Of a stretch of 31,001 bases of DNA, positions 1 to 31,001 are shown in pieces. The first letter of the stretch is position 1, and every line of letters begins with the position of its first letter. The stretch lies in assembly GCA_002189035.1 (NCBI GenBank), contig NEEC01000301.1, forward strand, positions 1 through 31,001, read 5' to 3'. A program made the translations under genes and the position numbers. Below the pieces are notes generated by a model that was not told where the DNA came from, did not search any database, and saw nothing but the letters and a program-made list of their open reading frames with translations. This stretch comes from Utricularia gibba (lineage: Eukaryota; Plantae; Magnoliophyta).

Positions 1-1162
1 TCAGCTTAGGCTTGGGCCGAAAGTAAGTTGAAGCCCGGCAAAAAAGTGATGTATTTATTAACGTTCGGTTTTCGGGGTTGCCTACATGGTTTTTTCAAGG
101 AACAGCTTCTCGTTTTGTGGTGGCCAGTCTCACTAGGAACTTGGTCCGGGCCGCTGATTCTTTATGGCTCATGAGGACAAAAGGATGCAAATCGATGAAT
201 ACAATGATGCATTTGTTTAAATTACGATATCACGTGCACCCCACATCATTTTTTCAACAACGTACTTTATACTTGAAGAGGCGGTCTTGGGTGCACCTAG
301 AACGGGACAAAGGTCAGGTTGGGCTTTGCCAGAGAGTTAGTTGTAGCCCGGCAATGAAAGTGATGTATTTATTAACGTTTGGTTTTCGGGGTTGCCTACA
401 TGGTTTTCAAGGAAAAGCTTCTCGTTTTGTGGCGGCTGCTCTCGCTGGGAACTTGGTCCGGGCCCCCGATTCTATATGGCTCATGAGGTCAACCAGATGC
501 AAATCGATGAATATAATGATGCATTTGTTTTAAATTACGATATCACGTGCACCCTACATCATTTTTTCAACAACTTACTTTATACTTGAGCAGGTGGTCT
601 TGGGGGGCAAGAGGAACAGGACAAAGGTCAGCATAGGCTTTGGCCGAAAGTAAGTTGTAGCCCGGCAAAGAAAGTGATGTATGTATTAACGTTCGGTTTT
701 CGGGTTGCTTACATGGTTTTTCAAGGAACAGCTTCTCCTTTAGTGGCGGCCAGTCTCGCTAGGAACTTGGTCCGGGCCCCTGACTCTTTATGGCTCATGA
801 GGAGAAAAGGATGCAAATCCATGAATACAATGATGCATTTGTTTAAATTACGATATCACGTGCACCCTACATCATTTTTTCAACAACTACTTTATACTTG
901 AGGAGGTGGTCTTGGGGGGCAAGAGGAACCGGACAAAGGTCAGCTTAGGCTTGGGCCGAAAGTAAGTTGTAGCCCGGCAAAGAAAGTGATGTATTTATTA
1001 ACGTTCGGTTTTCGGAAGCTGCCTAAATGCTTTTTGAAAGAACATCTTCTCGTTTTATGGCGGCCAGTCTCGCTGGGAACTTGGTCCTTGACCCTGGTTC
1101 TGTATGGCTCATGGGGTGATGAAAAAAAATGATGCATTTGTTTAAATTACGGTATCACGTGC
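1..1162. repeat. Tandem satellite, ~314-bp monomer, block 1 (about 3.7 monomers)
   Basis: The landmark AAAGTGATGTAT recurs at 46, 360, 674 and 986 (steps of 314, 314, 312 bp). The satellite stops at ...ATCACGTGC (1162). Confidence 0.98.
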
Positions 1163-1898
1163 CCTGGTTATATTCATATTGTGCATTTTGGTGAGGAGAG
1201 CAGATTCACCATAAGTTTTCTCAACTTCATTACCATCTCTTAGTTCCAATCTCTTTTCTGTAGATTGCAACTCAATCATGAACTCTCTAAATGTTGGCTC
1301 TGGTGTAACAGGATATTCAGGATACAGCTGATGGAGCTTTCCTTTCAATAATGTCAAGGATTTTTCTTTCTGTCTCAAGTGCACATAACTTTGGCTCGAA
1401 TCTTGCAGGTAGGCTCATGATTGCCTTGCTAATCACCTTTTGATCCTCAAGTTTTTCCCCCAATCCTCGAATCTCCTTCACAAGCTTCGCAGTACGTTCA
1501 TAATAGACTTGTATGGTTTCATTGTCTAACATTTTGTTCCTCTCAAAGTCCTCCAGCTTGTTTTTGCATAATATCTCTCTGAGTTTGGCATCGCCTTCAT
1601 AATGGGATTTGAGAGTATCCCATATTTCTTTTGCTGATTGACACTCTGCAATATCATCAAATAGATGTTCAGAGATGGCTTGATACAAGGCATCCATTGC
1701 TTCATCTTTTCTCTGTTGAAGATACTCAGCTTCCTCTTGCTGTTCTGATGTGGATTTGCTTGTTATTGTAATAGCCGGAATCTCCCTTTCAACAACATCC
1801 CAAATCTTTCTGACCCGAAGGTAGCTGCGCATCTTTTTGACCCAGCTTCCATACTCTGAACCATCAAATATTGGAGGTCCTCTACCAGATGCCATCAT
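1142..1898 (-). pseudogene. gag: Copia gag fragment, copy 1, frameshifted by +1
   Basis: Split into ORF-track frames 1317..1904 and 1142..1384. CCTTTCAAT at 1341-1349 has one more T than CCTTCAAT in copies 2 and 3. This may be a consensus error. Confidence 0.8.
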
Positions 1899-2004
1899 AG
1901 CCACCGCTTGACAAGCTTTGGGTTGATACTTGGTAATCTACCAAGTAAAAAACGCTGAACGGTATATAAAATACTGAAACGAACACAGGTTTGAGAACCT
2001 TACT

Positions 2005-2016
2005 GCTCTGATACCA
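2005..2016 (-). other. Primer-binding site for tRNA-iMet, copy 1
   Basis: Plus-strand GCTCTGATACCA is minus-strand TGGTATCAGAGC, directly adjacent to the CA end of the LTR. This is the canonical plant copia iMet PBS. Confidence 0.95.
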
Positions 2017-2336
2017 TGTTGTTGCAAGAAAAATAGAGTCTTGGGAAGTAACAAAAGGTATGCTTATGAGATCACCTTGGATGAAAAACGACTCATGAAC
2101 AATAAGAATGACCGAAAACCTAATTGACACGCATTTCTAGTAGGGCTATATATACCAAATACCTAGGTTACCCAACAGGGCCACAATCATTGAAAACACA
2201 CAAAAAGCCCAACAACTCGAATCCAACACTTCCATGCTCGAACCCAACACCTTTTTTTATCTGAAATATGACATTATGACACAAGTTTAGTTCTTCCAAT
2301 CACCTTCAAGCTTTGGATTGAGGCTGATCTCCAACA
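2017..2336 (-). repeat. LTR, copy 1 (320 bp)
   Basis: TGTTG...CAACA terminal inverted repeats, bounded by the PBS and by satellite. It is 5 bases shorter than copies 2 and 3 through small deletions. Confidence 0.9.
2147..2154 (-). promoter_or_regulatory. Putative LTR TATA box, copy 1
   Basis: Minus strand GGTATATATAGCCC in the middle of the LTR, in the usual position upstream of R/U5. Confidence 0.55.
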
Positions 2337-5216
2337 CTTGGTCCGGGCCCCTGATTCTTTATGGCTCATGAGGACAAAAGGATGCAAATCGATGAATACA
2401 ATGATGCAATTGTTTAAATTACGATATCACGTGCACCCTACATGATTTTTTCAACAACTTACTTTATACTTGAGGAGGTGGTCTTGGGGGCAAGAGGAAC
2501 CGGACAAAGGTCAGCTTATGCTTGGGTCGAAAGTAAGTTGTAGCCTGACAAAGAAAGTGATCTATTTATTAACGTTCGGTTTTCGGGGCTACCTACATGG
2601 TTTTTCAAGGAACGCTTCTCGTTTTGTGGCGGCCAGTCTCGCTGGAACTTGGTCTTTACCCCGATTCTGTATGGCTCATGAGGTCAACCGAATGCAAATC
2701 GATTAAAAAAAATGATGCATTTGTTTAAATTGCGATATGACGTGCACCCCACATGATTTTTTCAACAACTTACTTTATACTTGAGGAGGCGGTCTTGGGG
2801 TACAGCTGGAACGGGACAAAGGTAAGGTTTGGCTTGCGCCGAGAGTTAGTTGTAGCCCGACAAATAAAGTGATAATTTGATATCGTTCGGTTTTCGGGGC
2901 TACCTACATGGTTTTTCAAGGAACGCTTCTCGTTTTGTGGCGGCCAGTCTCGCTGGGAACTTGGTCCTTGACCCCGATTCTGTATGGCTCATGAGGTCAA
3001 CCGATGCAAATCGATTAAAAAAGTGATGCATTTGTTTAAATTGCGATATCACGTGCACCCCACATGATTTTTTCAACAACTTACTTTATACTTGAGGAGG
3101 CGATCTTGGGTGCACCTGAACGGACAAAGGTAAGGTTTGGCTTGCGCCGAGAGTTAGTTGTAGCCCGACAAATAAAGTGATGTATTTATTATCGTTCGGT
3201 TTTCGGGGGCTGCCTACATGGTTTTTCAAGGAACCGCTTCTCGTTTTGTGGCGGCCAGTCTCGCTGGGAACTTGGTCCTTGACCCCGATTCTGTATGGCT
3301 CATGAGGTCAACCGGATGCAAATCGAAAAAAAAATGATGCATTTGTTTAAATTACGATATCACGTGCACCCCACATGATTTTTTCGACAACTTACTTTAT
3401 ACATGGGAGGCGGTCTTGGGGGGTACCTGGAACGGAAAAGGTCAGCTTAGGCTTGGGCCGATAGTAAGTTGTAGCCCGGCAAAGAAAGTGATGTATTTAT
3501 TATCGTTCGGTTTTTGGGGGCTGCCTACATGGTTTTTCAAGGAACATCTTCTCTTTTTGTGGCGGCCGCTCTCGCTGGGAACTTGGTCCGGGCCCTGATT
3601 CTCTTTGGCTCATGAGGACAAAAGGATGCAAATCGATGAATACAATGATGCATTTGTTTAATTACGATATCACGTGCACCCCACATGATTTTTTCAACAA
3701 CTTACTTTATACTTGAGGAGGTGGTCTTGGGGGCAAGAGGAACCAGACAACGGTCATATTAGGCTTGGGCCGAAAGTAAGTTGTAGCCCGGCAAAAAGTG
3801 ATGTATTTATTAACGTTCGGTTTTCAGGGTTCCCTACATGGTTTTCCAAGGAAAAGCTTTTCGTTTTGTGGCGGCCGCTCTCGCTGGGACTTGGTCCGGG
3901 CCCCTAATTCTTTATGGCTCATGAGGACAAAAGGATGCAAATCGATGAAATAATGATGCATTTGTTTAAATTACGATGTCGCGTGCACCCCAAATGATTT
4001 TTTAACAACATACTTTATACATGAGGAGGCGGTCTTGGGGGGCACTTGGAACCGGAAAAAGATCAGCTTAGGCTTGGGCCGAAAGTAAGTTGTAGCCCGG
4101 CAAAGAAAGTGATGTATTTATTAACGTTCGGTTTTCGGGGTTGCCTACATGGTTTTCAAGGAACAGCTTCTCGTTTTGTGGTGGCCAGTCTCACTAGGAA
4201 CTTGGTCCGGGCCGCTGATTCTTTATGGCTCATGAGGACAAAAGGATGCAAATCGATGAATACAATGATGCATTTGTTTAAATTACGATATCACGTGCAC
4301 CCACATCATTTTTTCAACAACGTACTTTATACTTGAAGAGGCGGTCTTGGGGTGCACCTAGAACGGGACAAAGGTCAGGTTGGGCTTTGCCAGAGAGTTA
4401 GTTGTAGCCCGCAATGAAAGTGATGTATTTATTAACGTTTGGTTTTCGGGGTTGCCTACATGGTTTTTCAAGGAAAAGCTTCTCGTTTTGTGGCGGCTGC
4501 TCTCGCTGGGAACTTGGTCCGGGCCCCGATTCTATATGGCTCATGAGGTCAACCAGATGCAAATCGATGAATATAATGATGCATTTGTTTAAATTACGAT
4601 ATCACGTGCACCCTACATCATTTTTTCAACAACTTACTTTATACTTGAGCAGGTGGTCTTGGGGGCAAGAACAGGACAAGGTCAGCATAGGCTTTGGCCG
4701 AAAGTAAGTTGTAGCCCGGCAAAGAAAGTGATGTATGTATTAACGTTCGGTTTTCGGGGTTGCTTACATGGTTTTTCAAGGAACAGCTTCTCCTTTAGTG
4801 GCGGCCAGTCTCGCTAGGAACTTGGTCCGGGCCCCTGACTCTTTATGGCTCATGAGGAGAAAAGGATGCAAATCCATGAATACAATGATGCATTTGTTTA
4901 AATTACGATATCACGTGCACCCTACATCATTTTTTCAACAACGTACTTTATACTTGAGGAGGTGGTCTTGGGGGCAAGAGGAACCGGACAAAGGTCAGCT
5001 TAGGCTTGGGCCGAAAGTAAGTTGTAGCCCGGCAAAGAAAGTGATGTATTTATTAACGTTCGGTTTTCGGAAGCTGCCTAAATGCTTTTTGAAAGAACAT
5101 CTTCTCGTTTTATGGCGGCCAGTCTCGCTGGGAACTTGGTCCTTGACCCTGGTTCTGTATGGCTCATGGGTGATGAAAAAAAATGATGCATTTGTTTAAA
5201 TTACGGTATCACGTGC
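2337..5216. repeat. Tandem satellite, block 2 (about 9.3 monomers)
   Basis: AAAGTGAT landmarks at 2557, 2869, 3177, 3488, 3798, 4109, 4420, 4728 and 5041. Confidence 0.98.
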
Positions 5217-5951
5217 CCTGGTTATATTCATATTGTGCATTTTGGTGAGGAGAGCAGATTCACCATAAGTTTTCTCAACTTCATTACCATCTCTTAGTTC
5301 CAATCTCTTTTCTGTAGATTGCAACTCAATCATGAACTCTCTAAATGTTGGCTCTGGTGTAACAGGATATTCAGGATACAGCTGATGGAGCTTTCCTTCA
5401 ATAATGTCAAGGATTTTTCTTTCTGTCTCAAGTGCACATAACTTTGGCTCGAATCTTGCAGGTAGGCTCATGATTGCCTTGCTAATCACCTTTTGATCCT
5501 CAAGTTTTTCCCCCAATCCTCGAATCTCCTTCACAAGCTTCGCAGTACGTTCATAATAGACTTGTATGGTTTCATTGTCTAACATTTTGTTCCTCTCAAA
5601 GTCCTCCAGCTTGTTTTTGCATAATATCTCTCTGAGTTTGGCATCGCCTTCATAATGGGATTTGAGAGTATCCCATATTTCTTTTGCTGATTGACACTCT
5701 GCAATATCATCAAATAGATGTTCAGAGATGGCTTGATACAAGGCATCCATTGCTTCATCTTTTCTCTGTTGAAGATACTCAGCTTCCTCTTGCTGTTCTG
5801 ATGTGGATTTGCTTGTTATTGTAATAGCCGGAATCTCCCTTTCAACAACATCCCAAATCTTTCTGACCCGAAGGTAGCTGCGCATCTTTTTGACCCAGCT
5901 TCCATACTCTGAACCATCAAATATTGGAGGTCCTCTACCAGATGCCATCAT
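5196..5951 (-). CDS. gag: C-terminally truncated copia Gag, 251 aa from the first ATG, capsid-type region only
   Basis: N-terminal PPIFDGSEYGSWVKKMRSYL...IWDVVE resembles the DUF4219 motif. DEAMDALYQAISE...SAKEIWDTLKSHYEG and MLDNETIQVYYER...KVISKAIMSLPARF resemble the Retrotran_gag_2/UBN2 region of copia Gag. There is no CX2CX4HX4C knuckle. The ORF track starts 2 codons earlier at a GTG. The last residues (ARDTVI) and the TAA come from satellite sequence. Confidence 0.88.
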   Translation of the reverse strand: MMASGRGPPIFDGSEYGSWVKKMRSYLRVRKIWDVVEREIPAITITSKSTSEQQEEAEYLQQRKDEAMDALYQAISEHLFDDIAECQSAKEIWDTLKSHYEGDAKLREILCKNKLEDFERNKMLDNETIQVYYERTAKLVKEIRGLGEKLEDQKVISKAIMSLPARFEPKLCALETERKILDIIEGKLHQLYPEYPVTPEPTFREFMIELQSTEKRLELRDGNEVEKTYGESALLTKMHNMNITRARDTVI

Positions 5952-6057
5952 AGCCACCGCTTGACAAGCTTTGGGTTGATACTTGGTAATCTACCAAGTA
6001 AAAAACGCTGAACGGTATATAAAATACTGAAACGAACACAGGTTTGAGAACCTTACT

Positions 6058-6069
6058 GCTCTGATACCA
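6058..6069 (-). other. Primer-binding site for tRNA-iMet, copy 2
   Basis: Minus-strand TGGTATCAGAGC immediately after the LTR end. Confidence 0.95.
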
Positions 6070-6394
6070 TGTTGTTGCAAGAAAAATAGAGTCTTGGGAA
6101 GTAACAAAAAGGTAATGCTTATGAGATCACCTTGGATGAAAAACGACTCATGAACAATAAGAATGACCGAAAACCTAATTGACACGCATTTCTAGTAGGG
6201 CTTATATATACCAAATACCTAGGTTACCCAACAGTGGGCCACAATCATTGAAAACACACAAAAAGCCCAACAACTCGAATCCAACACTTCCATGCTCGAA
6301 CCCAACACCTTTTTTTATCTGAAATATGACATTATGACACAAGTTTAGTTCTTCCAATCACCTTCAAGCTTTGGATTGAGGCTGATCTCCAACA
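6070..6394 (-). repeat. LTR, copy 2 (325 bp)
   Basis: TGTTGGAGATC...CTTGCAACAACA with TGTTG/CAACA inverted termini. Confidence 0.92.
6202..6210 (-). promoter_or_regulatory. Putative LTR TATA box, copy 2
   Basis: Minus strand GGTATATATAAGCCC, oriented towards the PBS and gag. Confidence 0.6.
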
Positions 6395-9300
6395 CTTGGT
6401 CCGGGCCCCTGATTCTTTATGGCTCATGAGGACAAAAGGATGCAAATCGATGAATACAATGATGCAATTGTTTAAATTACGATATCACGTGCACCCTACA
6501 TGATTTTTTCAACAACTTACTTTATACTTGAGGAGGTGGTCTTGGGGGGCAAGAGGAACCGGACAAAGGTCAGCTTATGCTTGGGTCGAAAGTAAGTTGT
6601 AGCCTGACAAAGAAAGTGATCTATTTATTAACGTTCGGTTTTCGGGGCTACCTACATGGTTTTTCAAGGAACCGCTTCTCGTTTTGTGGCGGCCAGTCTC
6701 GCTGGGAACTTGGTCCTTTACCCCGATTCTGTATGGCTCATGAGGTCAACCGAATGCAAATCGATTAAAAAAAATGATGCATTTGTTTAAATTGCGATAT
6801 GACGTGCACCCCACATGATTTTTTCAACAACTTACTTTATACTTGAGGAGGCGGTCTTGGGTGCACCTGGAACGGGACAAAGGTAAGGTTTGGCTTGCGC
6901 CGAGAGTTAGTTGTAGCCCGACAAATAAAGTGATAAATTTGATATCGTTCGGTTTTCAGGGGCTACCTACATGGTTTTTCAAGGAACCGCTTCTCGTTTT
7001 GTGGCGGCCAGTCTCGCTGGGAACTTGGTCCTTGACCCCGATTCTGTATGGCTCATGAGGTCAACCGGATGCAAATCGATTAAAAAAATGATGCATTTGT
7101 TTAAATTGCGATATGACGTGCACCCCACATGATTTTTTCAACAACTTACTTTATACTTGAGGAGGCGGTCTTGGGTGCACCTGGAACGGGACAAAGGTAA
7201 GGTTTGGCTTGGCCGAGAGTTAGTTGTAGCCCGACAAATAAAGTGATGTATTTATTATCGTTCGGTTTTCGGGGGCTGCCTACATGGTTTTTCAAGGAAC
7301 CGCTTCTCGTTTTGTGGCGGCCAGTCTCGCTGGGAACTTGGTCCTTGACCCCGATTCTGTATGGCTCATGGGGTCAACCGGATGCAAATCGAAGAAAAAA
7401 AATGATGCATTTGTTTAAATTACGATATCACGTGCACCCACATGATTTTTTCAACAACTTACTTTATACATGGGGAGGCGGTCTTGGGGGTACCTGGAAC
7501 GGAAAATGGTCAGCTTGGCTTGGCCGATAGTAAGTTGTAGCCCGGCAAAAAAGTGATGTATTTATTATCGTTCGGTTTTCGGGGGCTGCCTACATGGTTT
7601 TTCAAGGAACATCTTCTCTTTTTGTGGCGGCCAGTCTCGCTGGGAACTTGGTCCGGCCCCGATTCTTTGGCTCATGAGGTCAAAAGGATGCAAATCGATG
7701 AAAAAATGATGCATTTGTTTAATTACGATATCACGTGCACCCCACATGATTTTTTCAACAACTTACTTTATACTTGAGGAGGCGGTCTTGGGGCAAGAGG
7801 AACCAGACAAGGTCATTTAGGCTTGGGCCGAAAGTAAGTTGTAGCCCGGCAAAGAAAGTGATGTATTTATTAACGTTCGGTTTTCGGGTTCCTACATGGT
7901 TTTCAAGGAAAAGCTTTTCGTTTTGTGGCGGCCGCTCTCGCTGGGAACTTGGTCCGGGCCCCGATTCTTTATGGCTCATGAGGTCAAAAGGATGCAAATC
8001 GATGAAAAAATGATGCATTTGTTTAAATTACGATGTCGCGTGCACCCCAAATGATTTTTTTAACAACTTACTTTATACTTGAGGAGGCGGTCTTGGGGGG
8101 CACTTGGAACCGGAAAAAGTCAGCTTAGGCTTGGGCCGAAAGTAAGTTGTAGCCCGGCAAAGAAAGTGATGTATTTATTACGTTCGGTTTTCGGGGTTGC
8201 CTACATGGTTTTTCAAGGAACAGCTTCTCGTTTTGTGGGCCAGTCTCGCTGGAACTTGGTCCGGGCCCTGATTCTTTATGGCTCATGAGGACAAAAGGAT
8301 GCAAATCGATGAAAAAATGATGCATTTGTTTAAATTACGATATCACGTGCACCCCACATGATTTTTTCAACAACTTACTTTATACTTGAGAGGCGGTCTT
8401 GGGGTGCACCTAGAACGGGACAAAGGTCAGGTTGGGCTTGCCGAGAGTTAGTTGTAGCCCGGCAAAGAAAGTGATGTATTTATTATCGTTCGGTTTTCGG
8501 GGTTGCCTACATGGTTTTTCAAGGAAAGCTTCTCGTTTTGTGGCGGCTGCTCTCGCTGGGAACTTGGTCCGGGCCCCGATTCTTATGGCTCATGAGGTCA
8601 ACCAGATGCAAATCGATGAATAAAATGATGCATTTGTTTAAATTACGATATCACGTGCACCCTACATCATTTTTTCAACAACTTACTTTATACTTGAGCA
8701 GGTGGTCTTGGGGGCAAGAGGAACAGGACAAAGGTCAGCATAGGCTTGGCCGAAAGTAAGTTGTAGCCCGGCAAAGAAAGTGATGTATTTATTAACGTTC
8801 GGTTTTCGGGGTTGCTACATGGTTTTTCAAGGAACAGCTTCTCTTTGTGGCGGCCAGTCTCGCTGGAACTTGGTCCGGGCCCCTGATTCTTTATGGCTCA
8901 TGAGGAGAAAAGGATGCAAATCTGAATACAATGATGCATTTGTTTAAATTACGATATCACGTGCACCCTACATGATTTTTTCAACAACTACTTTATACTT
9001 GAGGAGGGTCTTGGGGGGCAAGGAACCGGAAAAGGTCAGCTTAGGCTTGGGCCGAAAGTAAGTTGTAGCCCGGCAAAGAAAGTGATGTATTTATTAACGT
9101 TCGGTTTTCGGGGTTGCCTACATGGTTTTTCAAGGAACAGCTTCTCGTTTTGTGGTGGCCAGTCTCACTAGGAACTTGGTCCGGGCCCTGATTCTTTATG
9201 GCTCATGAGGACAAAAGGATGCAAATCGATGAATACAATGATGCATTTGTTTAAATTACGATATCACGTGCACCCCACATCATTTTTTCAACAATACTTT

Positions 9301-10184
9301 ATACTTGAAGAGGCGGTCTTGGGGTGCACCTAGAACGGGACAAAGGTCAGGTTGGCTTTGCCGAGAGTTAGTTGTAGCCCGGCAATGAAAGTGATGTATT
9401 TATTAACGTTTGGTTTTCGGGTTGCCTACATGGTTTTTCAAGGAAAAGCTTCTCGTTTTGTGGCGGCTGCTCTCGCTGGGAACTTGGTCCGGGCCCCCGA
9501 TTCTATATGGCTCATGAGGTCAACCAGATGCAAATCGATGAATATAATGCATTTGTTTAAATTACGATATCACGTGCACCCTACATCATTTTTTCAACAA
9601 TACTTTATACTTGAGCAGGTGGTCTTGGGGGCAAGAGGAACAGGACAAAGGTCAGCATAGGCTTTGGCCGAAAGTAAGTTGTAGCCCGGCAAAGAAAGTG
9701 ATGTATGTATTAACGTTCGGTTTTCGGGTTGCTTACATGGTTTTTCAAGGAACAGCTTCTCCTTTAGTGGCGGCCAGTCTCGCTAGGAACTTGGTCCGGG
9801 CCCCTGACTCTTTATGGCTCATGAGGAGAAAAGGATGCAAATCCATGAATACAATGATGCATTTGTTTAAATTACGATATCACGTGCACCCTACATCATT
9901 TTTTCAACAACTACTTTATACTTGAGGAGGGGTCTTGGGGGGCAAGAGGAACCGGAAAAGGTCAGCTTAGGCTTGGGCCGAAAGTAAGTTGTAGCCCGGC
10001 AAAGAAAGTGATGTATTTATTAACGTTCGGTTTTCGGAAGCTGCCTAAATGCTTTTTGAAAGAACATCTTCTCGTTTTATGGCGGCCAGTCTCGCTGGGA
10101 ACTTGGTCCTTGACCCTGGTTCTGTATGGCTCATGGGGTGATGAAAAAAAATGATGCATTTGTTTAAATTACGGTATCACGTGC
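6395..10184. repeat. Tandem satellite, block 3 (about 12.3 monomers)
   Basis: Landmarks at 6616, 6930, 7243, 7553, 7858, 8166, 8471, 8780, 9082, 9391, 9698 and 10008. Confidence 0.98.
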
Positions 10185-10919
10185 CCTGGTTATATTCATA
10201 TTGTGCATTTTGGTGAGGAGAGCAGATTCACCATAAGTTTTCTCAACTTCATTACCATCTCTTAGTTCCAATCTCTTTTCTGTAGATTGCAACTCAATCA
10301 TGAACTCTCTAAATGTTGGCTCTGGTGTAACAGGATATTCAGGATACAGCTGATGGAGCTTTCCTTCAATAATGTCAAGGATTTTTCTTTCTGTCTCAAG
10401 TGCACATAACTTTGGCTCGAATCTTGCAGGTAGGCTCATGATTGCCTTGCTAATCACCTTTTGATCCTCAAGTTTTTCCCCCAATCCTCGAATCTCCTTC
10501 ACAAGCTTCGCAGTACGTTCATAATAGACTTGTATGGTTTCATTGTCTAACATTTTGTTCCTCTCAAAGTCCTCCAGCTTGTTTTTGCATAATATCTCTC
10601 TGAGTTTGGCATCGCCTTCATAATGGGATTTGAGAGTATCCCATATTTCTTTTGCTGATTGACACTCTGCAATATCATCAAATAGATGTTCAGAGATGGC
10701 TTGATACAAGGCATCCATTGCTTCATCTTTTCTCTGTTGAAGATACTCAGCTTCCTCTTGCTGTTCTGATGTGGATTTGCTTGTTATTGTAATAGCCGGA
10801 ATCTCCCTTTCAACAACATCCCAAATCTTTCTGACCCGAAGGTAGCTGCGCATCTTTTTGACCCAGCTTCCATACTCTGAACCATCAAATATTGGAGGTC
10901 CTCTACCAGATGCCATCAT
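10164..10919 (-). CDS. gag: C-terminally truncated copia Gag, 251 aa, copy 3
   Basis: The ORF-track translation (10164..10925) is identical to that of copy 2. Confidence 0.88.
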   Translation of the reverse strand: MMASGRGPPIFDGSEYGSWVKKMRSYLRVRKIWDVVEREIPAITITSKSTSEQQEEAEYLQQRKDEAMDALYQAISEHLFDDIAECQSAKEIWDTLKSHYEGDAKLREILCKNKLEDFERNKMLDNETIQVYYERTAKLVKEIRGLGEKLEDQKVISKAIMSLPARFEPKLCALETERKILDIIEGKLHQLYPEYPVTPEPTFREFMIELQSTEKRLELRDGNEVEKTYGESALLTKMHNMNITRARDTVI

Positions 10920-11025
10920 AGCCACCGCTTGACAAGCTTTGGGTTGATACTTGGTAATCTACCAAGTAAAAAACGCTGAACGGTATATAAAATACTGAAA
11001 CGAACACAGGTTTGAGAACCTTACT

Positions 11026-11037
11026 GCTCTGATACCA
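11026..11037 (-). other. Primer-binding site for tRNA-iMet, copy 3
   Basis: Minus-strand TGGTATCAGAGC immediately after the LTR end. Confidence 0.95.
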
Positions 11038-11362
11038 TGTTGTTGCAAGAAAAATAGAGTCTTGGGAAGTAACAAAAAGGTAATGCTTATGAGATCACCT
11101 TGGATGAAAAACGACTCATGAACAATAAGAATGACCGAAAACCTAATTGACACGCATTTCTAGTAGGGCTTATATATACCAAATACCTAGGTTACCCAAC
11201 AGTGGGCCACAATCATTGAAAACACACAAAAAGCCCAACAACTCGAATCCAACACTTCCATGCTCGAACCCAACACCTTTTTTTATCTGAAATATGACAT
11301 TATGACACAAGTTTAGTTCTTCCAATCACCTTCAAGCTTTGGATTGAGGCTGATCTCCAACA
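11038..11362 (-). repeat. LTR, copy 3 (325 bp)
   Basis: TG...CA termini; matches the copy 2 LTR. Confidence 0.92.
11170..11178 (-). promoter_or_regulatory. Putative LTR TATA box, copy 3
   Basis: Minus strand GGTATATATAAGCCC. Confidence 0.6.
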
Positions 11363-14300
11363 CTTGGTCCGGGCCCCTGATTCTTTATGGCTCATGAGGA
11401 CAAAAGGATGCAAATCGATGAATACAATGATGCAATTGTTTAAATTACGATATCACGTGCACCCTACATGATTTTTTCAACAACTTACTTTATACTTGAG
11501 GAGGTGGTCTTGGGGGGCAAGAGGAACCGGACAAAGGTCAGCTTATGCTTGGGTCGAAAGTAAGTTGTAGCCTGACAAAGAAAGTGATCTATTTATTAAC
11601 GTTCGGTTTTCGGGGCTACCTACATGGTTTTTCAAGGAACCGCTTCTCGTTTTGTGGCGGCCAGTCTCGCTGGGAACTTGGTCCTTTACCCCGATTCTGT
11701 ATGGCTCATGAGGTCAACCGAATGCAAATCGATTAAAAAAAATGATGCATTTGTTTAAATTGCGATATGACGTGCACCCCACATGATTTTTTCAACAACT
11801 TACTTTATACTTGGGGAGGCGGTCTTGGGGTGCACCTGGAACGGGACAAAGGTAAGGTTTGGCTAGCGCCGAGAGTTAGTTGTAGCCCGACAAATAAAGT
11901 GATAAATTTGATATCGTTCGGTTTTCAGGGGCTACCTACATGGTTTTTCAAGGAACCGCTTCTCGTTTTGTGGCGGCCAGTCTCGCTGGGAACTTGGTCT
12001 TTGACCCCGATTCTGTATGGCTCATGAGGTCAACCGGATGCAAATCGATTAAAAAAAATGATGCATTTGTTTAAATTGCGGTATGACGTGCACCCCACAT
12101 GATTTTTTTCAACAACTTACTTTATACTTCAGGAGGCGGTCTTGGGGTGCACCTGGAACGGGACAAAGGTCAGCTTAGGCTTGGCAGAAAGTAAGTTGTA
12201 GCCCGCCAAAGAAAGTGATGTATTTATTATCGTTTGGTTTTCGGGGTTGCCTACATGGTTTTTCAAGGAACATCTTCTCGTTTTGTGGCTCGCTGGGGAC
12301 TTTTCCTGGACCCCGATTCTGTATGGCTCATGGGGTCAAAAGGATGCAAATCGATGAATAAAATGATGCATTTGTTTAATTACGATATCACGTGCACCCC
12401 ACATGATTTTTTCGACAACTTACTTTATACATGGGAGGCGGTCTTGGGGGTACCTGGAACCGGAAAATGGTCAGCTTAGGCTTGGGCCGATAGTAAGTTG
12501 TAGCCCGGCAAAGAAAGTGATGTATTTATTATCGTTCGGTTTTCGGGGGTTCCTACATGGTTTTTCAAGGAACATCTTCTCGTTTTGTGGCAGCCAGTCT
12601 CGCTGGGAGCTTTGTCCTGACCCCGATTCTGTATGGCTCATGGGGTCAAAAGGATGCAAATCGATGAATACAATGATGCATTTGTTTCAATTACGATATC
12701 ACGTGCACCCCACATGATTTTTTCGACAACTTACTTTATACATGGGAGGCGGTCTTGGGGGTACCTGGAACCGGAAAATGGTCAGCTTAGGCTTGGGCCG
12801 ATAGTAAGTTGTAGCCCGGCAAGAAAGTGATGTATTTATTAACGTTCGGTTTTCGGGGTTGCCTACATGGTTTTTCAAGGAACATCTTCCCGTTTTGTGG
12901 TGGCTAGTCTCGCTGGGAACTTTGTCCTGGACCTCGATTCTTTATGTCTTATGAGGTCAACCGGATGCAAATCGATGAAAAAAATTGATGCATTTGTTTA
13001 AATTACGATATCACGTGCACCCTACATGATTTTTTCAACAACTTACTTTATACTTGAGGAGGTGGTCTTGGGGGGCAAGAGGAACCAGACAACGGTCATA
13101 TTAGGCTTGGGCCGAAAGTAAGTTGTAGCCCGGCAAAGAAAGTGTTGTATTTATTAACGTTCGGTTTTCAGGGTTGCCTACATGGTTTTCCAAGGAAAAG
13201 CTTTTCGTTTTGTGGCGGCCGCTCTCGCAGGGCACTTGGTCCGGGCCCCTGATTCTTTATGGCTCATGAGGACAAAAGGATGCAAATCGATGAAAATAAT
13301 GATGCATTTGTTTAAATTACGATGTCGCGTGCACCCCAAATGATTTTTTAACAACATACTTTATACATGAGGAGGCGGTCTTGGGGGGCACTTGGAACCG
13401 GAAAAAGATCAGCTTAGGCTTGGGCGAAAGTAAGTTGTAGCCCGGCAAAGAAAGTGATGTATTTATTATCGTTCGGTTTACGGGGGCTTCCTACATGGTT
13501 TTTCAAGGAACATCTTCTCGTTTTATGGCGGCCAGTCTCGCTGGGAACTTGGTCCTTGACCCTGGTTCTGTATGGCTAATGGGGTCAACCGGATGCAAAT
13601 CGATGAAAAAAAATGATGCATTTGTTTAAATTGCGATATCACATGCACCCCACATGATTTTTTCAACAACTTACTTTATACTTGAGGAGGCGATCTTAGG
13701 GTGCACCTCGAACAGGACAAAGGTAAGGTTTGGCTTGCGCCAAGAGTTAGTTGTAGCCCGACAAAGAAAGTGATGTATTTATTATCGTTCGGTTTTTGGG
13801 GTTGCCTACATGGTTTTTCAAGGAACATCTTCTCGTTTTGTGGCAGCCAGTCTCGCTGGGAGCTTTGTCCTGGACCCCGATTCTGTATGGCTCATGGGGT
13901 CAAAAGGATGCAAATCGATGAATACAATGATGCATTTGTTTCAATTACGATATCACGTGCACCCCACATGATTTTTTCGACAACTTACTTTATACATGGG
14001 GAGGCGGTCTTGGGGGGTACCTGGAACCGGAAAATGGTCAGCTTAGGCTTGGGCCGATAGTAAGTTGTAGCCCGGCAAAGAAAGTGATGTATTTATTATC
14101 GTTCGGTTTCGGGGTTCCTACATGGTTTTTCAAGGAACATCTTCTCGTTTTGTGGCAGCCAGTCTCGCTGGGACTTTGTCCTGGACCCCGATTCTGTATG
14201 GCTCATGGGGTCAAATCATTGATGCATTTGTTTAAATTACGATATCACGTGCACCCTACATGATTTTTTCAACAACTTACTTTATATTTGAGGAGGTGGT

Positions 14301-17300
14301 CTTGGGGGGCAAGAGGAACCAGACAACGGTCATATTAGGCTTGGGCCGAAAGTAAGTTGTAGCCCGGCAAAGAAAGTGATGTATTTATTAACGTTCGGTT
14401 TTCAGGGTTGCCTACATGGTTTTCCAAGGAAAAGCTTTTCGTTTTGTGGCGGCTGCTCTCGCTGGGCACTTGGTCCGGGCCCCTGATTCTTTATGGCTCA
14501 TGAGGACAAAAGGATGCAAATCGATGAAAATAATGATGCATTTGTTTAAATTACGATGTCGCGTGCACCCCAAATGATTTTTTAACAACATACTTTATAC
14601 ATGAGGAGGCGGTCTTGGGGGGCACTTGGAACCGGAAAAAGATCAGCTTAGGCTTGGGCGAAAGTAAGTTGTAGCCCGGCAAAGAAAGTGATGTATTTAT
14701 TATCGTTCGGTTTTTGGGGTTGCCTACATGGTTTTTCAAGGAACATCTTCTCGTTTTGTGGTGGCAGTCTCGCTGGGAACTTGGTCCTTGACCCGATTCT
14801 GTATGGCTCATGGGGTCAACCGGATGCAAATCGATGAAAAAAATGATGCATTTGTTTAAATTACGATATCACGTGCACCCACATGATTTTTTCACAACTT
14901 ACTTTATACTGGGGAGGCGGTCTTGGGGGTACCTGGAACCGGAAAAGGTCAGCTTAGGCTTGGGCCGATAGTAAGTTGTAGCCCGGCAAAGAAAGTGATG
15001 TATTTATTAACGTTCGGTTTTCGGGGTTGCCTACATGGTTTTTCAAGGAACATCTTCTCGTTTTGTGGTGGCAGTCTCGCTGGGAGCTTTGTCCTGGACC
15101 CCGATTCTGTATGGCTCATGGGGTCAAAAGGATGCAAATCGATGAATACAATGATGCATTTGTTTCAATTACGATATCACGTGCACCCCACATGATTTTT
15201 TCGACAACTTACTTTATACATGGGGAGGCGGTCTTGGGGGTACCTGGAACCGGAAAATGGTCAGCTTAGGCTTGGGCCGATAGTAAGTTGTAGCCCGGCA
15301 AGAAAGTGATGTATTTATTAACGTTCGGTTTCGGGGTTGCCTACATGGTTTTTCAAGGAACATCTTCCCGTTTTGTGGTGGCTAGTCTCGCTGGGAACTT
15401 TGTCCTGGACCTCGATTCTTTATGTCTTATGAGGTCAACCGGATGCAAATCGATGAAAAAAATTGATGCATTTGTTTAAATTACGATATCACGTGCACCC
15501 TACATGATTTTTTCAACAACTTACTTTATACTTGAGGAGGTGGTCTTGGGGGCAAGAGGAACCAGACAACGGTCATATTAGGCTTGGGCCGAAAGTAAGT
15601 TGTAGCCCGGCAAAGAAAGTGATGTATTTATTAACGTTCGGTTTTCAGGGTTGCCTACATGGTTTTCCAAGGAAAAGCTTTTCGTTTTGTGGCGGCCGCT
15701 CTCGCAGGGCACTTGGTCCGGGCCCCTGATTCTTTATGGCTCATGAGGACAAAAGGATGCAAATCGATGAAAATAATGATGCATTTGTTTAAATTACGAT
15801 GTCGCGTGCACCCCAAATGATTTTTTTAACAACATACTTTATACATGAGGAGGCGGTCTTGGGGGCACTTGGAACCGGAAAAAGATCAGCTTAGGCTTGG
15901 GCCGAAAGTAAGTTGTAGCCCGGCAAAGAAAGTGATGTATTTATTATCGTTCGGTTTACGGGGGCTTCCTACATGGTTTTTCAAGGAACATCTTCTCGTT
16001 TTATGGCGGCCAGTCTCGCTGGGAACTTGGTCCTTGACCCTGGTTCTGTATGGCTAATGGGGTCAACCGGATGCAAATCGATGAAAAAAAAATGCATTTG
16101 TTTAAATTGCGATATCACATGCACCCCACATGATTTTTTCAACAACTTACTTTATACTTGAGGAGGCGATCTTAGGGTGCACCTCGAACAGGACAAAGGT
16201 AAGGTTTGGCTTGCGCCAAGAGTTAGTTGTAGCCCGACAAAGAAAGTGATGTATTTATTATCGTTCGTTTTGGGGTTGCCTACATGGTTTTTCAAGGAAC
16301 ATCTTCTCGTTTTGTGGCAGCCAGTCTCGCTGGGAGCTTTGTCCTGGACCCCGATTCTGTATGGCTCATGGGGTCAAAAGGATGCAAATCGATGAATACA
16401 ATGATGCATTTGTTTCAATTACGATATCACGTGCACCCCACATGATTTTTTCGACAACTTACTTTATACATGGGGAGGCGGTCTTGGGGGGTACCTGGAA
16501 CCGGAAAATGGTCAGCTTAGGCTTGGGCCGATAGTAAGTTGTAGCCCGGCAAAGAAAGTGATGTATTTATTATCGTTCGGTTTACGGGGGCTTCCTACAT
16601 GGTTTTTCAAGGAACATCTTCTCGTTTTGTGGCAGCCAGTCTCGCTGGGAGCTTTGTCCTGGACCCCGATTCTGTATGGCTCATGGGGTCAAAAGGATGC
16701 AAATCGATGAATACAATGATGCATTTGTTTCAATTACGATATCACGTGCACCCCACATGATTTTTTCGACAACTTACTTTATACATGGGGAGGCGGTCTT
16801 GGGGGTACCTGGAACCGGAAAATGGTCAGCTTAGGCTTGGGCCGATAGTAAGTTGTAGCCCGGCAAGAAAGTGATGTATTATTAACGTTCGGTTTTCGGG
16901 GTTGCCTACATGGTTTTTCAAGGAACATCTTCCGTTTTGTGGTGGCTAGTCTCGCTGGGAACTTTGTCCTGGACCTCGATTCTTTATGTCTTATGAGGTC
17001 AACCGGATGCAAATCGATGAAAAAAATTGATGCATTTGTTTAAATTACGATATCACGTGCACCCTACATGATTTTTTCAACAACTTACTTTATACTTGAG
17101 GAGGTGGTCTTGGGGGGCAAGAGGAACCAGACAACGGTCATATTAGGCTTGGCCGAAAGTAAGTTGTAGCCCGGCAAAGAAAGTGATGTATTTATTAACG
17201 TTCGGTTTTCAGGGTTGCCTACATGGTTTTCCAAGGAAAAGCTTTTCGTTTTGTGGCGGCCGCTCTCGCAGGGCACTTGGTCCGGGCCCCTGATTCTTTA

Positions 17301-20300
17301 TGGCTCATGAGGACAAAAGGATGCAAATCGATGAAAATAATGATGCATTTGTTTAAATTACGATGTCGCGTGCACCCCAAATGATTTTTTTAACAACATA
17401 CTTTATACATGAGGAGGCGGTCTTGGGGGCACTTGGAACCGGAAAAAGATCAGCTTAGGCTTGGGCGAAAGTAAGTTGTAGCCCGGCAAAGAAAGTGATG
17501 TATTTATTATCGTTCGGTTTACGGGGGCTTCCTACATGGTTTTTCAAGGAACATCTTCTCGTTTTATGGCGGCCAGTCTCGCTGGGAACTTGGTCCTTGA
17601 CCCTGGTTCTGTATGGCTAATGGGGTCAACCGGATGCAAATCGATGAAAAAAAATGATGCATTTGTTTAAATTGCGATATCACATGCACCCCACATGATT
17701 TTTTCAACAACTTACTTTATACTTGAGGAGGCGATCTTAGGGTGCACCTCGAACAGGACAAAGGTAAGGTTTGGCTTGCGCCAAGAGTTAGTTGTAGCCC
17801 GACAAAGAAAGTGATGTATTTATTATCGTTCGGTTTTTGGGGTTGCCTACATGGTTTTTCAAGGAACATCTTCTCGTTTTGTGGCAGCCAGTCTCGCTGG
17901 GAGCTTTGTCCTGGACCCCGATTCTGTATGGCTCATGGGGTCAAAAGGATGCAAATCGATGAATACAATGATGCATTTGTTTCAATTACGATATCACGTG
18001 CACCCACATGATTTTTTCGACAACTTACTTTATACATGGGGAGGCGGTCTTGGGGGTACCTGGAACCGGAAAATGGTCAGCTTAGGCTTGGGCCGATAGT
18101 AAGTTGTAGCCCGGCAAAGAAAGTGATGTATTTATTATCGTTCGGTTTACGGGGGCTTCCTACATGGTTTTTCAAGGAACATCTTCTCGTTTTGTGGCAG
18201 CCAGTCTCGCTGGGAGCTTTGTCCTGGACCCCGATTCTGTATGGCTCATGGGTCAAATACATTCCGATGCATTTGTTTAAATTACGATATCACGTGCACC
18301 CTACATGATTTTTTCAACAACTTACTTTTATTTGAGGAGGTGGTCTTGGGGGCAAGAGGAACCAGACAACGGTCATATTAGGCTTGGGCCGAAAGTAAGT
18401 TGTAGCCCGGCAAAGAAAGTGATGTATTTATTAACGTTCGGTTTTCAGGGTTGCCTACATGGTTTTCCAAGGAAAAGCTTTTCGTTTTGTGGCGGGTGCT
18501 CTCGCTGGGCACTTGGTCCGGGCCCCTGATTCTTTATGGCTCATGAGGACAAAAGATGCAAATCGATGAAAATAATGATGCATTTGTTTAAATTACGATG
18601 TCGCGTGCACCCCAAATGATTTTTAACAACATACTTTATACATGAGGAGCGGTCTTGGGGGGCACTTGGAACCGGAAAAAGATCAGCTTAGGCTTGGGAC
18701 GAAAGTAAGTTGTAGCCCGGCAAAGAAAGTGATGTATTTATTATCGTTCGGTTTACGGGGGCTTCCTACATGGTTTTTCAAGGAACATCTTCTCGTTTTA
18801 TGGCGGCCAGTCTCGCTGGGAACTTGGTCCTTGACCCTGGTTCTGTATGGCTAATGGGGTCAACCGGATGCAAATCGATGAAAAAAAAATGATGCATTTG
18901 TTTAAATTGCGATATCACATGCACCCCACATGATTTTTTCAACAACTTACTTTATACTTGAGGAGGCGATCTTAGGGTGCACCTCGAACAGGACAAAGGT
19001 AAGGTTTGGCTTGCGCCGAGAGTTAGTTGTAGCCCGACAAAGAAAGTGATGTATTTATTATCGTTCGGTTTTTGGGGTTGCCTACATGGTTTTTCAAGGA
19101 ACATCTTCTCGTTTTGTGGCAGCCAGTCTCGCTGGGAGCTTTGTCCTGGACCCCGATTCTGTATGGCTCATGGGGTCAAAAGGATGCAAATCGATGAATA
19201 CAATGATGCATTTGTTTCAATTACGATATCACGTGCACCCCACATGATTTTTTCGACAACTTACTTTATACATGGGGAGGCGGTCTTGGGGGTACCTGGA
19301 ACCGGAAAATGGTCAGCTTAGGCTTGGGCCGATAGTAAGTTGTAGCCCGGCAAAGAAAGTGATGTATTTATTATCGTTCGGTTTACGGGGGCTTCCTACA
19401 TGGTTTTTCAAGGAACATCTTCTCGTTTTGTGGCAGCCAGTCTCGCTGGGAGCTTTGTCCTGGACCCCGATTCTGTATGGCTCATGGGGTCAAATACATT
19501 GATGCATTTGTTTAAATTACGATATCACGTGCACCCTACATGATTTTTTCAACAAACTTACTTTATACTTGAGGAGGTGGTCTTGGGGGCAAGAGGAACC
19601 AGACAACGGTCATATTAGGCTTGGGCCGAAAGTAAGTTGTAGCCCGGCAAAGAAAGTGATGTATTTATTAACGTTCGGTTTTCAGGGTTGCCTACATGGT
19701 TTTCCAAGGAAAAGCTTTTCGTTTTGTGGCGGCGCTCTCGCTGGGCACTTGGTCCGGGCCCCTGATTCTTTATGGCTCATGAGGACAAAAGATGCAAATC
19801 GATGAAAATAATGATGCATTTGTTTTAAATTACGATGTCGCGTGCACCCAAATGATTTTTTTTAACAACATACTTTATACATGAGGAGGCGGTCTTGGGG
19901 GGCACTTGGAACCGGAAAAAGATCAGCTTAGGCTTGGGACGAAAGTAAGTTGTAGCCCGGCAAAGAAAGTGATGTATTTATTATCGTTCGGTTTACGGGG
20001 GCTTCCTACATGGTTTTTCAAGGAACATCTTCTCGTTTTGGCGGCCAGTCTCGCTGGGAACTTGGTCCTTGACCCGATTCTGTATGGCTAATGGGGTCAA
20101 CCGGATGCAAATCGATGAAAAAAAAATGATGCATTTGTTTAAATTACGATATCACGTGCACCCCACATGATTTTTTCAACAACTTACTTTATACTTGAGG
20201 AGGCGTCTTGGGTACCTGAACAGGACAAAGGTAGGTTTGGCTTGGCCGAAGTAAGTTGTAGCCCGACAAAGAAAGTGATGTATTTATTATCGTTCGGTTT

Positions 20301-29300: not shown

Positions 29301-31001
29301 TCTGTATGGCTAATGGGGTCAACCGGATGCAAATCGATGAAAAAAAATGATGCATTTGTTTAAATTGCGATATCACATGCACCCCACATGATTTTTTCAA
29401 CAACTTACTTTATACTTGAGGAGGCGATCTTAGGGTGCACCTCGAACAGGACAAAGGTAAGGTTTGGCTTGGCCAAGAGTTAGTTGTAGCCCGACAAAGA
29501 AAGTGATGTATTTATTATCGTTCGGTTTTTGGGGTTGCCTACATGGTTTTTCAAGGAACATCTTCTCGTTTTGTGGCAGCCAGTCTCGCTGGGAACTTGT
29601 CCTGGACCCCGATTCTGTATGGCTCATGGGGTCAAAAGGATGCAAATCGATGAATACAATGATGCATTTGTTTCAATTACGATATCACGTGCACCCCACA
29701 TGATTTTTTCGACAACTTACTTTATACATGGGGAGGCGGTCTTGGGGGGTACCTGGAACCGGAAAATGGTCAGCTTAGGCTTGGGCCGATAGTAAGTTGT
29801 AGCCCGGCAAAGAAAGTGATGTATTTATTATCGTTCGGTTTACGGGGCTTCCTACATGGTTTTTCAAGGAACATCTTCTCGTTTTGTGGCAGCAGTCTCG
29901 CTGGGAGCTTTGTCCTGGACCCCGATTCTGTATGGCTCATGGGTCAAATACATGATGCATTTGTTTAAATTACGATATCACGTGCACCCTACATGATTTT
30001 TTTCAACAACTTACTTTATACTTGAGGAGGTGGTCTTGGGGGGCAAGAGGAACCAGACAACGGTCATATAGGCTTGGGCCGAAAGTAAGTTGTAGCCCGG
30101 CAAAGAAAGTGATGTATTTATTAACGTTCGGTTTTTAGGGTTGCCTACATGGTTTTCCAAGGAAAAGCTTTTCGTTTTGTGGCGGCTGCTCTCGCTGGGC
30201 ACTTGGTCCGGGCCCCTGATTCTTTATGGCTCATGAGGACAAAATGCAAATCGATGAAAATAATGATGCATTTGTTTAAATTACGATGTCGCGTGCACCC
30301 CAAATGATTTTTTAACAACATACTTTATACATGAGGAGGCGGTCTTGGGGGGCACTTGGAACCGGAAAAAGATCAGCTTAGGCTTGGGACGAAGTAAGTT
30401 GTAGCCCGGCAAAGAAAGTGATGTATTTATTATCGTTCGGTTTACGGGGGCTTCCTACATGGTTTTTCAAGGAACATCTTCTCGTTTTGGCGGCCAGTCT
30501 CGCTGGGAACTTGGTCCTTGACCCTGGTTCTGTATGGCTAATGGGGTCAACCGGATGCAAATCGATGAAAAAAAATGATGCATTTGTTTAAATTGCGATA
30601 TCACATGCACCCCACATTTTTCAACAACTTACTTTACTTGAGGAGGCGATCTTAGGGGCACCTCGAACAGGACAAAGGTGGTTTGGCTTGCGCCAAGAGT
30701 TAGTTGTAGCCCGACAAAGAAAGTGATGTATTTATTATCGTTCGGTTTTGGGGTTGCCTACATGGTTTTCAAGGAACATCTTCTCGTTTTGTGGCAGCCA
30801 GTCTCGCTGGGAGCTTGTCCTGGACCCCGATTCTGTATGGCTCATGGGGTCAAAAGGATGCAAATCGATGAATACAATGATGCATTTGTTTCAATTACGA
30901 TATCACGTGCACCCACATGATTTTTTTCGACAACTTACTTTATACATGGGGAGGCGGTCTTGGGGGTACCTGGAACCGGAAAATGGTCAGCTTAGGCTTG
31001 G
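11363..31001. repeat. Tandem satellite, block 4 (about 63 monomers, no element insertions)
   Basis: 63 AAAGTGAT-type landmarks counted from 11584 to 30723, with steps of 287-317 bp. The shortest steps belong to monomers carrying an ~18-bp deletion. Confidence 0.98.
12800..31001. repeat. Four-monomer higher-order repeat, ~1.22-1.24 kb
   Basis: The monomer preceded by AACCAGACAACGGTCATATT has its landmark at 13142, 14376, 15619, 17183, 18419, 19656, 20897, 22123, 23360, 25531, 26753, 27975, 28880 and 30109. Ten of the 13 intervals are 1222-1243 bp (4 monomers); the others contain 5, 7 and 3 monomers. Confidence 0.9.

Follow-up and report, generated by a model that had tools for sequence, protein, structure and literature searches.

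In Arabidopsis, ATHILA elements and solo LTRs in the CEN180 satellite have been duplicated after integration, a copying that Naish et al. credit to a higher-order-repeat mechanism or to gene conversion (bioRxiv 10.1101/2021.05.30.446350). LTR-initiated read-through from Athila2/106B into cen180 repeats has been observed by RT-PCR and RACE (May et al. 2005, PMC1317654). The TRIM element Cassandra forms shared-LTR tandem arrays, gives multi-unit read-through transcripts and has a copy number altered by unequal crossing-over; the same work cites TGGTATCAGAGC as a conserved LTR-retrotransposon PBS (Kalendar et al. 2020, PMC7215508). LTR retrotransposons that carry internal tandem repeats and seed satellites are described by Vondrak et al. 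(2020, PMC7004042).

The stretch of DNA analysed here (the window, 31,001 nucleotides) is filled by a satellite of ~312 bp (TRF, 92.6 copies over 2336-31001), of which 91 monomers, averaging 89% identity overall by pairwise comparison, tile the window in a monomer map made with nhmmer. Three non-satellite blocks, all on the minus strand, interrupt the satellite; these are co-oriented copia remnants, hereafter stubs, at 1163-2336, 5217-6394 and 10185-11362. In the following feature list, unit A runs from LTR1 to LTR2 and unit B from LTR2 to LTR3, monomers are numbered m00, m01 and so on, and letters denote monomer variants.

1 to 1162, minus strand: monomers x y z C' (m00-m03) below copy 1; the amplified block continues past the left window end
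1163 to 2016, minus strand: internal part of copy 1, with PBS (2005-2016), 5' UTR and gag from the ATG at 1898; ORF 1317-1904
2017 to 2336, minus strand: LTR1, 320 bp, the 5' LTR of remnant copy 1 and formally the 'downstream LTR' of unit A
2337 to 5216, minus strand: 2880 bp of satellite, the 'cargo' of unit A; by the nhmmer map and pairwise identities these are m04-m13 (D' p q r s t x y z C')
5217 to 6069, minus strand: internal part of copy 2, with PBS (6058-6069), 5' UTR and truncated gag ORF 5196-5957 (253 aa)
6070 to 6394, minus strand: LTR2, 325 bp, with TATATATA at 6210-6203
6395 to 10184, minus strand: about 3790 bp of satellite, the 'cargo' of unit B; m14-m26, in which the variants of unit A are joined by a further triplet, x' y' z'
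10185 to 11037, minus strand: internal part of copy 3, with PBS (11026-11037), 5' UTR and truncated gag ORF 10164-10925 (253 aa); identical to copy 2
11038 to 11362, minus strand: LTR3, 325 bp
11363 to 12140, minus strand: monomers D' p q (m27-m29) upstream of LTR3, the last part common to the other units

The LTRs have the ends TGTTG...CAACA; LTR2 and LTR3 are 100% identical, LTR1 has 98.5% identity to LTR2, with indel columns as the only differences, and the window holds no further LTR matches. An nhmmer match starting at 2301 had suggested that the LTR resembles the satellite over its first 36 nt; on direct alignment the satellite match begins at the LTR edge, with a 1-nt overlap. Directly after each LTR stands the PBS TGGTATCAGAGC, complementary to the 3' end of tRNA-iMet. 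The TATA box, TATATATA, occupies LTR positions 185-193 of 325, with further starts at 11178 and 2154, and the LTR downstream of it contains no AATAAA-like hexamer, even when one mismatch is allowed. A tRNA scan found nothing, an Rfam scan of positions 1-13000 recovered no 5S or other family, and the published 5S boxA/boxC motif gave 0 matches on either strand.

The internal parts encode a gag that is truncated, lacking the zinc knuckle, the satellite encoding its last 6 codons and the stop. Pfam matches consist solely of Retrotran_gag_2 (PF14223, E 2.3e-27) and DUF4219 (PF13961, E 6.5e-5, below its gathering score). Against a pine copia gag the ORF has 28% identity, and a protein word search with gag returned one distant pine gag only, the ORF itself not being recovered. 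In copy 1, which lies outside both units, a 1-nt insertion causes a frameshift that shortens the product to 195 aa. On the strength of its LTR-PBS arrangement and its copia-type gag, the stub is the remnant of a Ty1/copia LTR retrotransposon. Everything outside the three stubs is satellite by monomer tiling of the window, which contains no pol (PR-INT-RT-RH), no second LTR for any stub and no 3' element end; a target-site duplication is definable for no copy.

Most of what the first-pass annotation said of this layout is borne out, namely that the LTRs all point the same way, that two units are bounded by near-identical LTRs, that these contain 2.9 and 3.8 kb of satellite, and that the units arose by tandem amplification, for which the same junctions and the co-duplicated flanking monomers speak. 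It had also assigned to each unit a TATA box (given as 6202-6210), an intact PBS and a gag ORF; the TATA box, at 6210-6203, and the PBS hold, and the gag has to be amended to a truncated frame with a satellite-encoded end.

The identity of the satellite itself was also considered. X43.1 of Silene latifolia, a 313-bp satellite, was considered as a candidate and rejected, as the 3' 19 nt of the published probe 12H5 (PMC3212565) had no match at up to 3 mismatches. A satellite of 312 bp, Hssat1, is known from Humulus scandens (PMC10614002). Four conserved 17-20-mers of the present satellite were absent from published papers in a full-text search. Scans of metagenome collections, which hold hardly any plant DNA and so say little here, gave 0 matches for a satellite 28-mer and for an LTR/PBS 26-mer, and in these same collections, nearly devoid of plant DNA, neither a parent element nor a dispersed copy was found.

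In copy 2 the satellite meets gag at 5216|5217 (satellite consensus position 262) and LTR2 meets the satellite at 6394|6395 (position 164), and both junctions are identical in all three copies. Satellite phase 164-262 (99 bp) occurs on both sides of the stub, from which it follows that the truncation extended into the satellite. Over the cassette of ~1180 bp there are 0 substitutions among the three copies, and copy 1 is set apart by nothing more than 6 indel columns. From LTR to LTR, unit A spans 4378 bp and unit B 5293 bp; the head-to-tail unit lengths are 4053 and 4968 bp, the difference of 915 bp being the extra x'y'z' triplet, a whole-monomer difference. Among the flanking variants, the series x y z C' and D' p q come back with their order unchanged and at 97.7-100% identity, with m00-m03 99.6-100% identical to m10-m13, and m27-m29 100, 99.7 and 98.7% identical to m14-m16; monomer C' has the same 15-bp internal deletion at each copy, and region 1-5216 as a whole matches 4063-9271 at 97%. 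Identical breakpoints and co-duplicated private flanking monomers, the marks of a co-amplified TE fragment, are thus present in every copy. From m30 on no monomer has a counterpart above about 94%, so the amplified block ends near 12140; its left end lies beyond the window. Divergence within the unit is uneven, with 0-2 substitutions per pair over x y z C', the stub and D' p (about 2.8 kb) as against 19 substitutions in 1.2 kb of monomers q-t (binomial P 2e-9 for the contrast), and one simple duplication is therefore insufficient; later gene conversion or a two-step history would be needed.

Common junctions, common flanking variants and lengths that differ by a three-monomer block all argue for one truncated insertion that was then amplified. 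We put at roughly 87% the probability that a single truncated copia insertion was multiplied with its neighbouring satellite by ordinary satellite amplification, the LTR-gag-satellite-LTR units being a by-product. The architecture of the locus and its single-origin history are established by the sequence comparisons above. A single Ty1/copia element would have entered a monomer of the 312-bp satellite at consensus position 164. Its zinc-knuckle region of gag, pol, the PPT and the 3' LTR would then have been lost through a deletion or an illegitimate recombination that began inside gag and reached downstream satellite (position 262); where exactly gag was broken, as compared with an intact element, is inferred. 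The remaining stub of 1.18 kb, comprising the 5' LTR, iMet PBS, 5' UTR and the capsid part of gag, would then have been multiplied together with neighbouring monomers by the processes that build satellite higher-order repeats, presumably unequal exchange between misaligned monomers and gene conversion, so that no fewer than three units, 4.05 and 4.97 kb long, came to stand head to tail. On this account tandem copying of a one-LTR stub automatically produces the LTR-PBS-gag-satellite-LTR layout, which is not a rebuilt element. As no substitution is seen in 1.18 kb, an assumed rate of 1.3e-8 substitutions per site per year puts any two copies less than about 100,000 years apart.

That all three stubs sit at the same satellite phase would also be expected if a short non-autonomous LTR-gag element had inserted three times independently by targeting one satellite position. 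Each copy, however, is bordered by the same private monomer variants, which match at 99-100% and extend for >1 kb on one flank and for about 0.45-0.8 kb on the opposite one, and this flank identity effectively refutes independent insertions; the identical gag/satellite junction, the common 15-bp deletion in C' and the lack of a 3' LTR and of a TSD stand against them as well. It is very improbable that mis-assembled repeat reads turned a single stub into three: indels, a typical type of long-read error, are all that distinguishes the stubs, but one unit is three monomers longer than the other, and the distal monomers of the units differ by 5-19 real substitutions.

Amplification of a single stub leaves the question of what the units might do. 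The first-pass annotation had proposed that each could give a discrete 4-5 kb RNA, mostly minus-strand satellite. In such a built-in transcription unit the upstream LTR would drive an R-to-R transcript through gag and 9-12 minus-strand monomers, polyadenylated in the next LTR and feeding siRNA or chromatin pathways. The LTRs are indeed intact, very young, co-oriented and identical, and have a TATA box, and there are precedents in the LTR-started Athila2/106B co-transcripts into cen180 in met1 Arabidopsis (PMC1317654) and in multi-unit read-through transcripts from Cassandra arrays (PMC7215508). Nevertheless, we consider such a built-in transcription unit improbable, and the sequence does not support the proposal, because a transcript would meet canonical AATAAA 7 times in unit A and 10 times in unit B before it reached the next LTR, which itself has nothing resembling that hexamer after its TATA box, and because positions 1-12500 contain no inverted repeat of at least 40 nt able to give hairpin dsRNA. 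The first AATAAA follows the gag stop by 142 nt, and 82 of the 91 monomers have the hexamer on their minus strand. With AATAAA so abundant in the satellite and wanting in the LTR after the TATA box, a short RNA would be the likelier product; if the LTR promoter fires, the likeliest transcript would be a short LTR-gag-satellite RNA ending at one of the first satellite AATAAA. It is a long shot that the young, identical LTRs become active upon release of silencing and that some of their transcripts pass the AATAAA to reach the next LTR, giving strand-specific, R-bounded satellite RNAs. In that case the amplified stub would be a regularly spaced promoter/terminator module that lets the satellite be transcribed and supplies siRNA, and on rare occasions it would be copied in trans as a template.

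Mobilisation of the units in trans, with the parent copia family packaging and reverse-transcribing them as two-LTR pseudo-elements and so spreading satellite monomers, was likewise put forward by the first-pass annotation, and we judge it very unlikely. The 5' cis parts, i.e. R-U5, an intact PBS and the 5' part of gag, are present, and the identical LTRs have TG...CA ends; the 30 nt before each LTR are, on the other hand, plain satellite, identical among the copies, in which the longest purine run is of 6 and stands away from the LTR; a PPT is therefore lacking, as that annotation had itself cautioned. In the repeat-carrying LTR elements introduced above, the tandem repeats are reportedly placed upstream of the PPT. 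Compared with a complete or mobilisable LTR element, the units lack a PPT, a TSD with unrelated flanks, and pol, and share their LTRs head to tail; the full-length RNA required is itself unlikely, and the kilobases of identical flank common to all copies imply copying at the DNA level. A functional reading of the units is weakly supported, the sequence giving no sign of a discrete satellite RNA produced from them or of an ability to move.

Amplification of one stub with its satellite would make this locus a tidy, datable and very young case of a retrotransposon fragment captured by satellite homogenisation. In an array that is otherwise monotonous the unique stub can be used as a marker, and the sharp block of identity around it shows, as is seldom possible, how long a tract of exchange or conversion is.

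No new mechanism is called for, as Arabidopsis already provides described cases both of TEs copied as DNA within satellites and of LTR-started transcripts that run on into satellites. The locus resembles ATHILA in CEN180 in that a retrotransposon insertion has been copied at the DNA level together with satellite; the ATHILA copies, however, are Ty3/gypsy elements, full-length or solo LTR, lying 8.9-538 kb apart, whereas here a copia LTR-PBS-gag stub recurs in tight tandem every 4-5 kb and consecutive LTRs bracket gag and satellite. With Athila2/106B it has in common an LTR embedded in satellite, which in that system is the promoter of strand-specific satellite co-transcripts upon loss of methylation, the known form of the transcription idea; there the transcripts have been demonstrated, whereas for the present units they are conjectural and the transcribed satellite strand is full of AATAAA. 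The LTR-internal-LTR-internal-LTR layout and the PBS are those of Cassandra, but a Cassandra unit consists of an LTR and its own internal domain only, with 5S boxA/boxC in the LTRs, whereas here each unit includes 9-12 host satellite monomers (2.9-3.8 kb) and has neither 5S motifs nor a PPT. The elements of Vondrak et al. (PMC7004042) similarly contain satellite-like arrays between the two LTRs of one unit; their repeats belong to a complete mobile element, whereas at this locus the satellite came first and its bracketing by LTRs is secondary.

The window, all 31 kb of it, is a single tandem array of a satellite with a monomer of about 312 bp (TRF resolves 2336-31001 into 92.6 copies with an 80% match; nhmmer tiles the window with 91 monomers), the monomers having a mean pairwise identity of 89%. 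To the right of 11363 (11363-31001) the array has a higher-order period of four monomers (1247 bp, 92.5% identity), every fourth monomer of this bulk array being of one distinct type. X43.1, a 313-bp satellite of Silene latifolia, was rejected as the identity of the repeat, its published probe giving no match. On the minus strand TATAAA occurs once per monomer in nearly all of the monomers scanned (those within 2017-11362), and the poly(A)-like and TATA-like hexamers of the satellite show strong strand asymmetry. For CpG, the satellite (12000-31000) has an observed/expected ratio of 0.88, an unusually good retention for a plant heterochromatic repeat, compared with 0.37 in the copia-derived sequence (5217-6394). 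The array is interrupted by three truncated copia remnants, here termed stubs:

1163-2336, minus strand, stub 1, interrupting the satellite array
5217-6394, minus strand, stub 2, interrupting the satellite array
10185-11362, minus strand, stub 3, interrupting the satellite array

The stub LTRs are 320-325 bp long, with ends TGTTG...CAACA, and carry a TATA box, TATATATA, at LTR positions 185-193; in copy 2 this lies at 6210-6203, in agreement with the site proposed in the first-pass annotation. Directly after the LTR comes a 12-nt primer-binding site (PBS), TGGTATCAGAGC, which is the established site for initiator tRNA-Met. The same PBS has been quoted for plant LTR elements (PMC7215508). A 5' UTR and then a gag ORF follow (ATG at 5951, 10919 or 1898), in which Pfam identifies Retrotran_gag_2 (E 2.3e-27), a sub-threshold DUF4219 and nothing else; the nearest outside relative reached is a copia gag from pine, 28% identical. 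The element-derived part of gag ends between 5216 and 5217, the final six codons and the TAA being encoded by satellite. The truncated ORF (253 aa, capsid domain only, with its satellite-encoded closure at 5196-5216 and 10164-10184) resembles a gag-only expression cassette, but its copies, with zero substitutions between them, carry no information on selection. The stubs lack a zinc knuckle, pol, a polypurine tract (PPT) and a 3' LTR, and the LTR used as a query against the window returned these three copies and no others.

Comparison of the copies and their surroundings indicates that there was one insertion, which was afterwards copied at the DNA level. Across about 1180 bp the three stubs differ by no substitution; relative to copies 2 and 3, copy 1 has six indel columns, and the frameshift caused by one of them shortens its gag to 195 aa. 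Three or four of the copy 1 indels are in short runs and one deletes a base in the TATA stretch; these differences could be sequencing errors of long reads and not real mutations (1163-2336 compared with 5217-6394). In every copy the LTR/satellite junction is at consensus position 164 and the gag/satellite junction at 262. Satellite phase 164-262 (99 bp) is thus present on both flanks of the stub, which implies that the truncating deletion extended from gag into the downstream satellite, rather than being confined to the element. All three copies share a private internal deletion of about 15 bp in the monomer next to gag (5160-5216 in copy 2), a handy marker for the amplified block.

With individual monomers denoted by letters, the plus-strand order is x y z C', stub 1, D' p q r s t x y z C', stub 2, D' p q r s t x' y' z' x y z C', stub 3, D' p q, then ordinary array. 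Counterpart monomers are 95.6-100% identical between units, compared with 89% for monomers generally, and the extra x'y'z' triplet accounts precisely for the difference between the stub spacings, 4053 and 4968 bp. The right end of the amplified block lies near 12140 and its left end beyond the window. The shared flanks exclude independent insertions of the stubs. The units are three monomers apart in length and carry real substitutions in q-t, which makes it unlikely that the near-identical copies are an assembly artefact.

Identity is uneven within the block. The segment comprising x y z C', the stub and D' p (about 2.8 kb) has 0-2 substitutions per pair, whereas a comparison of units 1 and 2 gives 19 substitutions in the 1.2 kb of monomers q-t (about 1.5%; binomial P 2e-9), and one of units 2 and 3 gives 5 in the roughly 0.3 kb of monomer q (binomial P 2e-7). 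A single duplication would not leave such a profile within 1-12140. The stub and its nearest monomers may later have spread, or been re-homogenised by conversion, with 1.18 kb of unique sequence as the pairing anchor; alternatively, the bulk array might convert the distal monomers. The profile is suggestive of a tract of conversion or exchange that has the unique stub as its anchor. With an assumed rate of 1.3e-8 substitutions per site per year, 0 differences in 1178 bp set an upper bound of about 98,000 years (5% level) on the separation of each pair of copies.

The first-pass annotation had read the locus as two units, each bounded by LTRs, and this layout is borne out: the first, LTR3-PBS-gag-3.8 kb satellite-LTR2, is 5293 bp long (11362 to 6070), and the second, LTR2-PBS-gag-2.9 kb satellite-LTR1, is 4378 bp long (6394 to 2017). 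The arrangement follows, however, from tandem copying of any one-LTR stub. The further proposal, that each unit could give a discrete 4-5 kb RNA begun in one LTR and ended in the next, is not favoured by the distribution of poly(A) signals. AATAAA is present in 82 of the 91 monomers on the minus (transcribed) strand and in 8 on the plus strand, such that a transcript started in LTR2 would meet seven, and one started in LTR3 ten, before the next LTR, the earliest being 142 nt past the gag stop, in T-rich surroundings and with CA dinucleotides just downstream; in the LTR after the TATA box there is no hexamer matching AATAAA with at most one mismatch. On these motifs a short LTR-gag-satellite RNA appears more likely than a 4-5 kb RNA, although plant poly(A) signals are loose and this is hence no proof. 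Inverted repeats of at least 40 nt able to form hairpin RNA are absent from the region (1-12500). Movement of the units in trans, also envisaged earlier, is argued against by the lack of a PPT (the 30 nt preceding every LTR are ordinary satellite, in which the longest purine run is six and does not abut the LTR), by the lack of a definable target-site duplication for the units, and by the flanks, which are the same around every stub copy.

In Arabidopsis, ATHILA elements and solo LTRs have been duplicated at the DNA level within CEN180 arrays, the mechanism proposed being that by which higher-order repeats are built, or else gene conversion (10.1101/2021.05.30.446350), and in met1 plants co-transcripts begin in the Athila2/106B LTR and extend into cen180 repeats (PMC1317654). 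Cassandra TRIMs form shared-LTR arrays with multi-unit transcripts and a copy number altered by unequal exchange (PMC7215508). The present locus differs from Cassandra in being without its defining features, having neither 5S boxes nor a PPT, and in that its unit contains host satellite; it works like the post-integration duplications of Arabidopsis, but in a tighter tandem form. These comparisons place it in the known class of TE fragments captured and amplified by a satellite array, of which it is a new and very young case.
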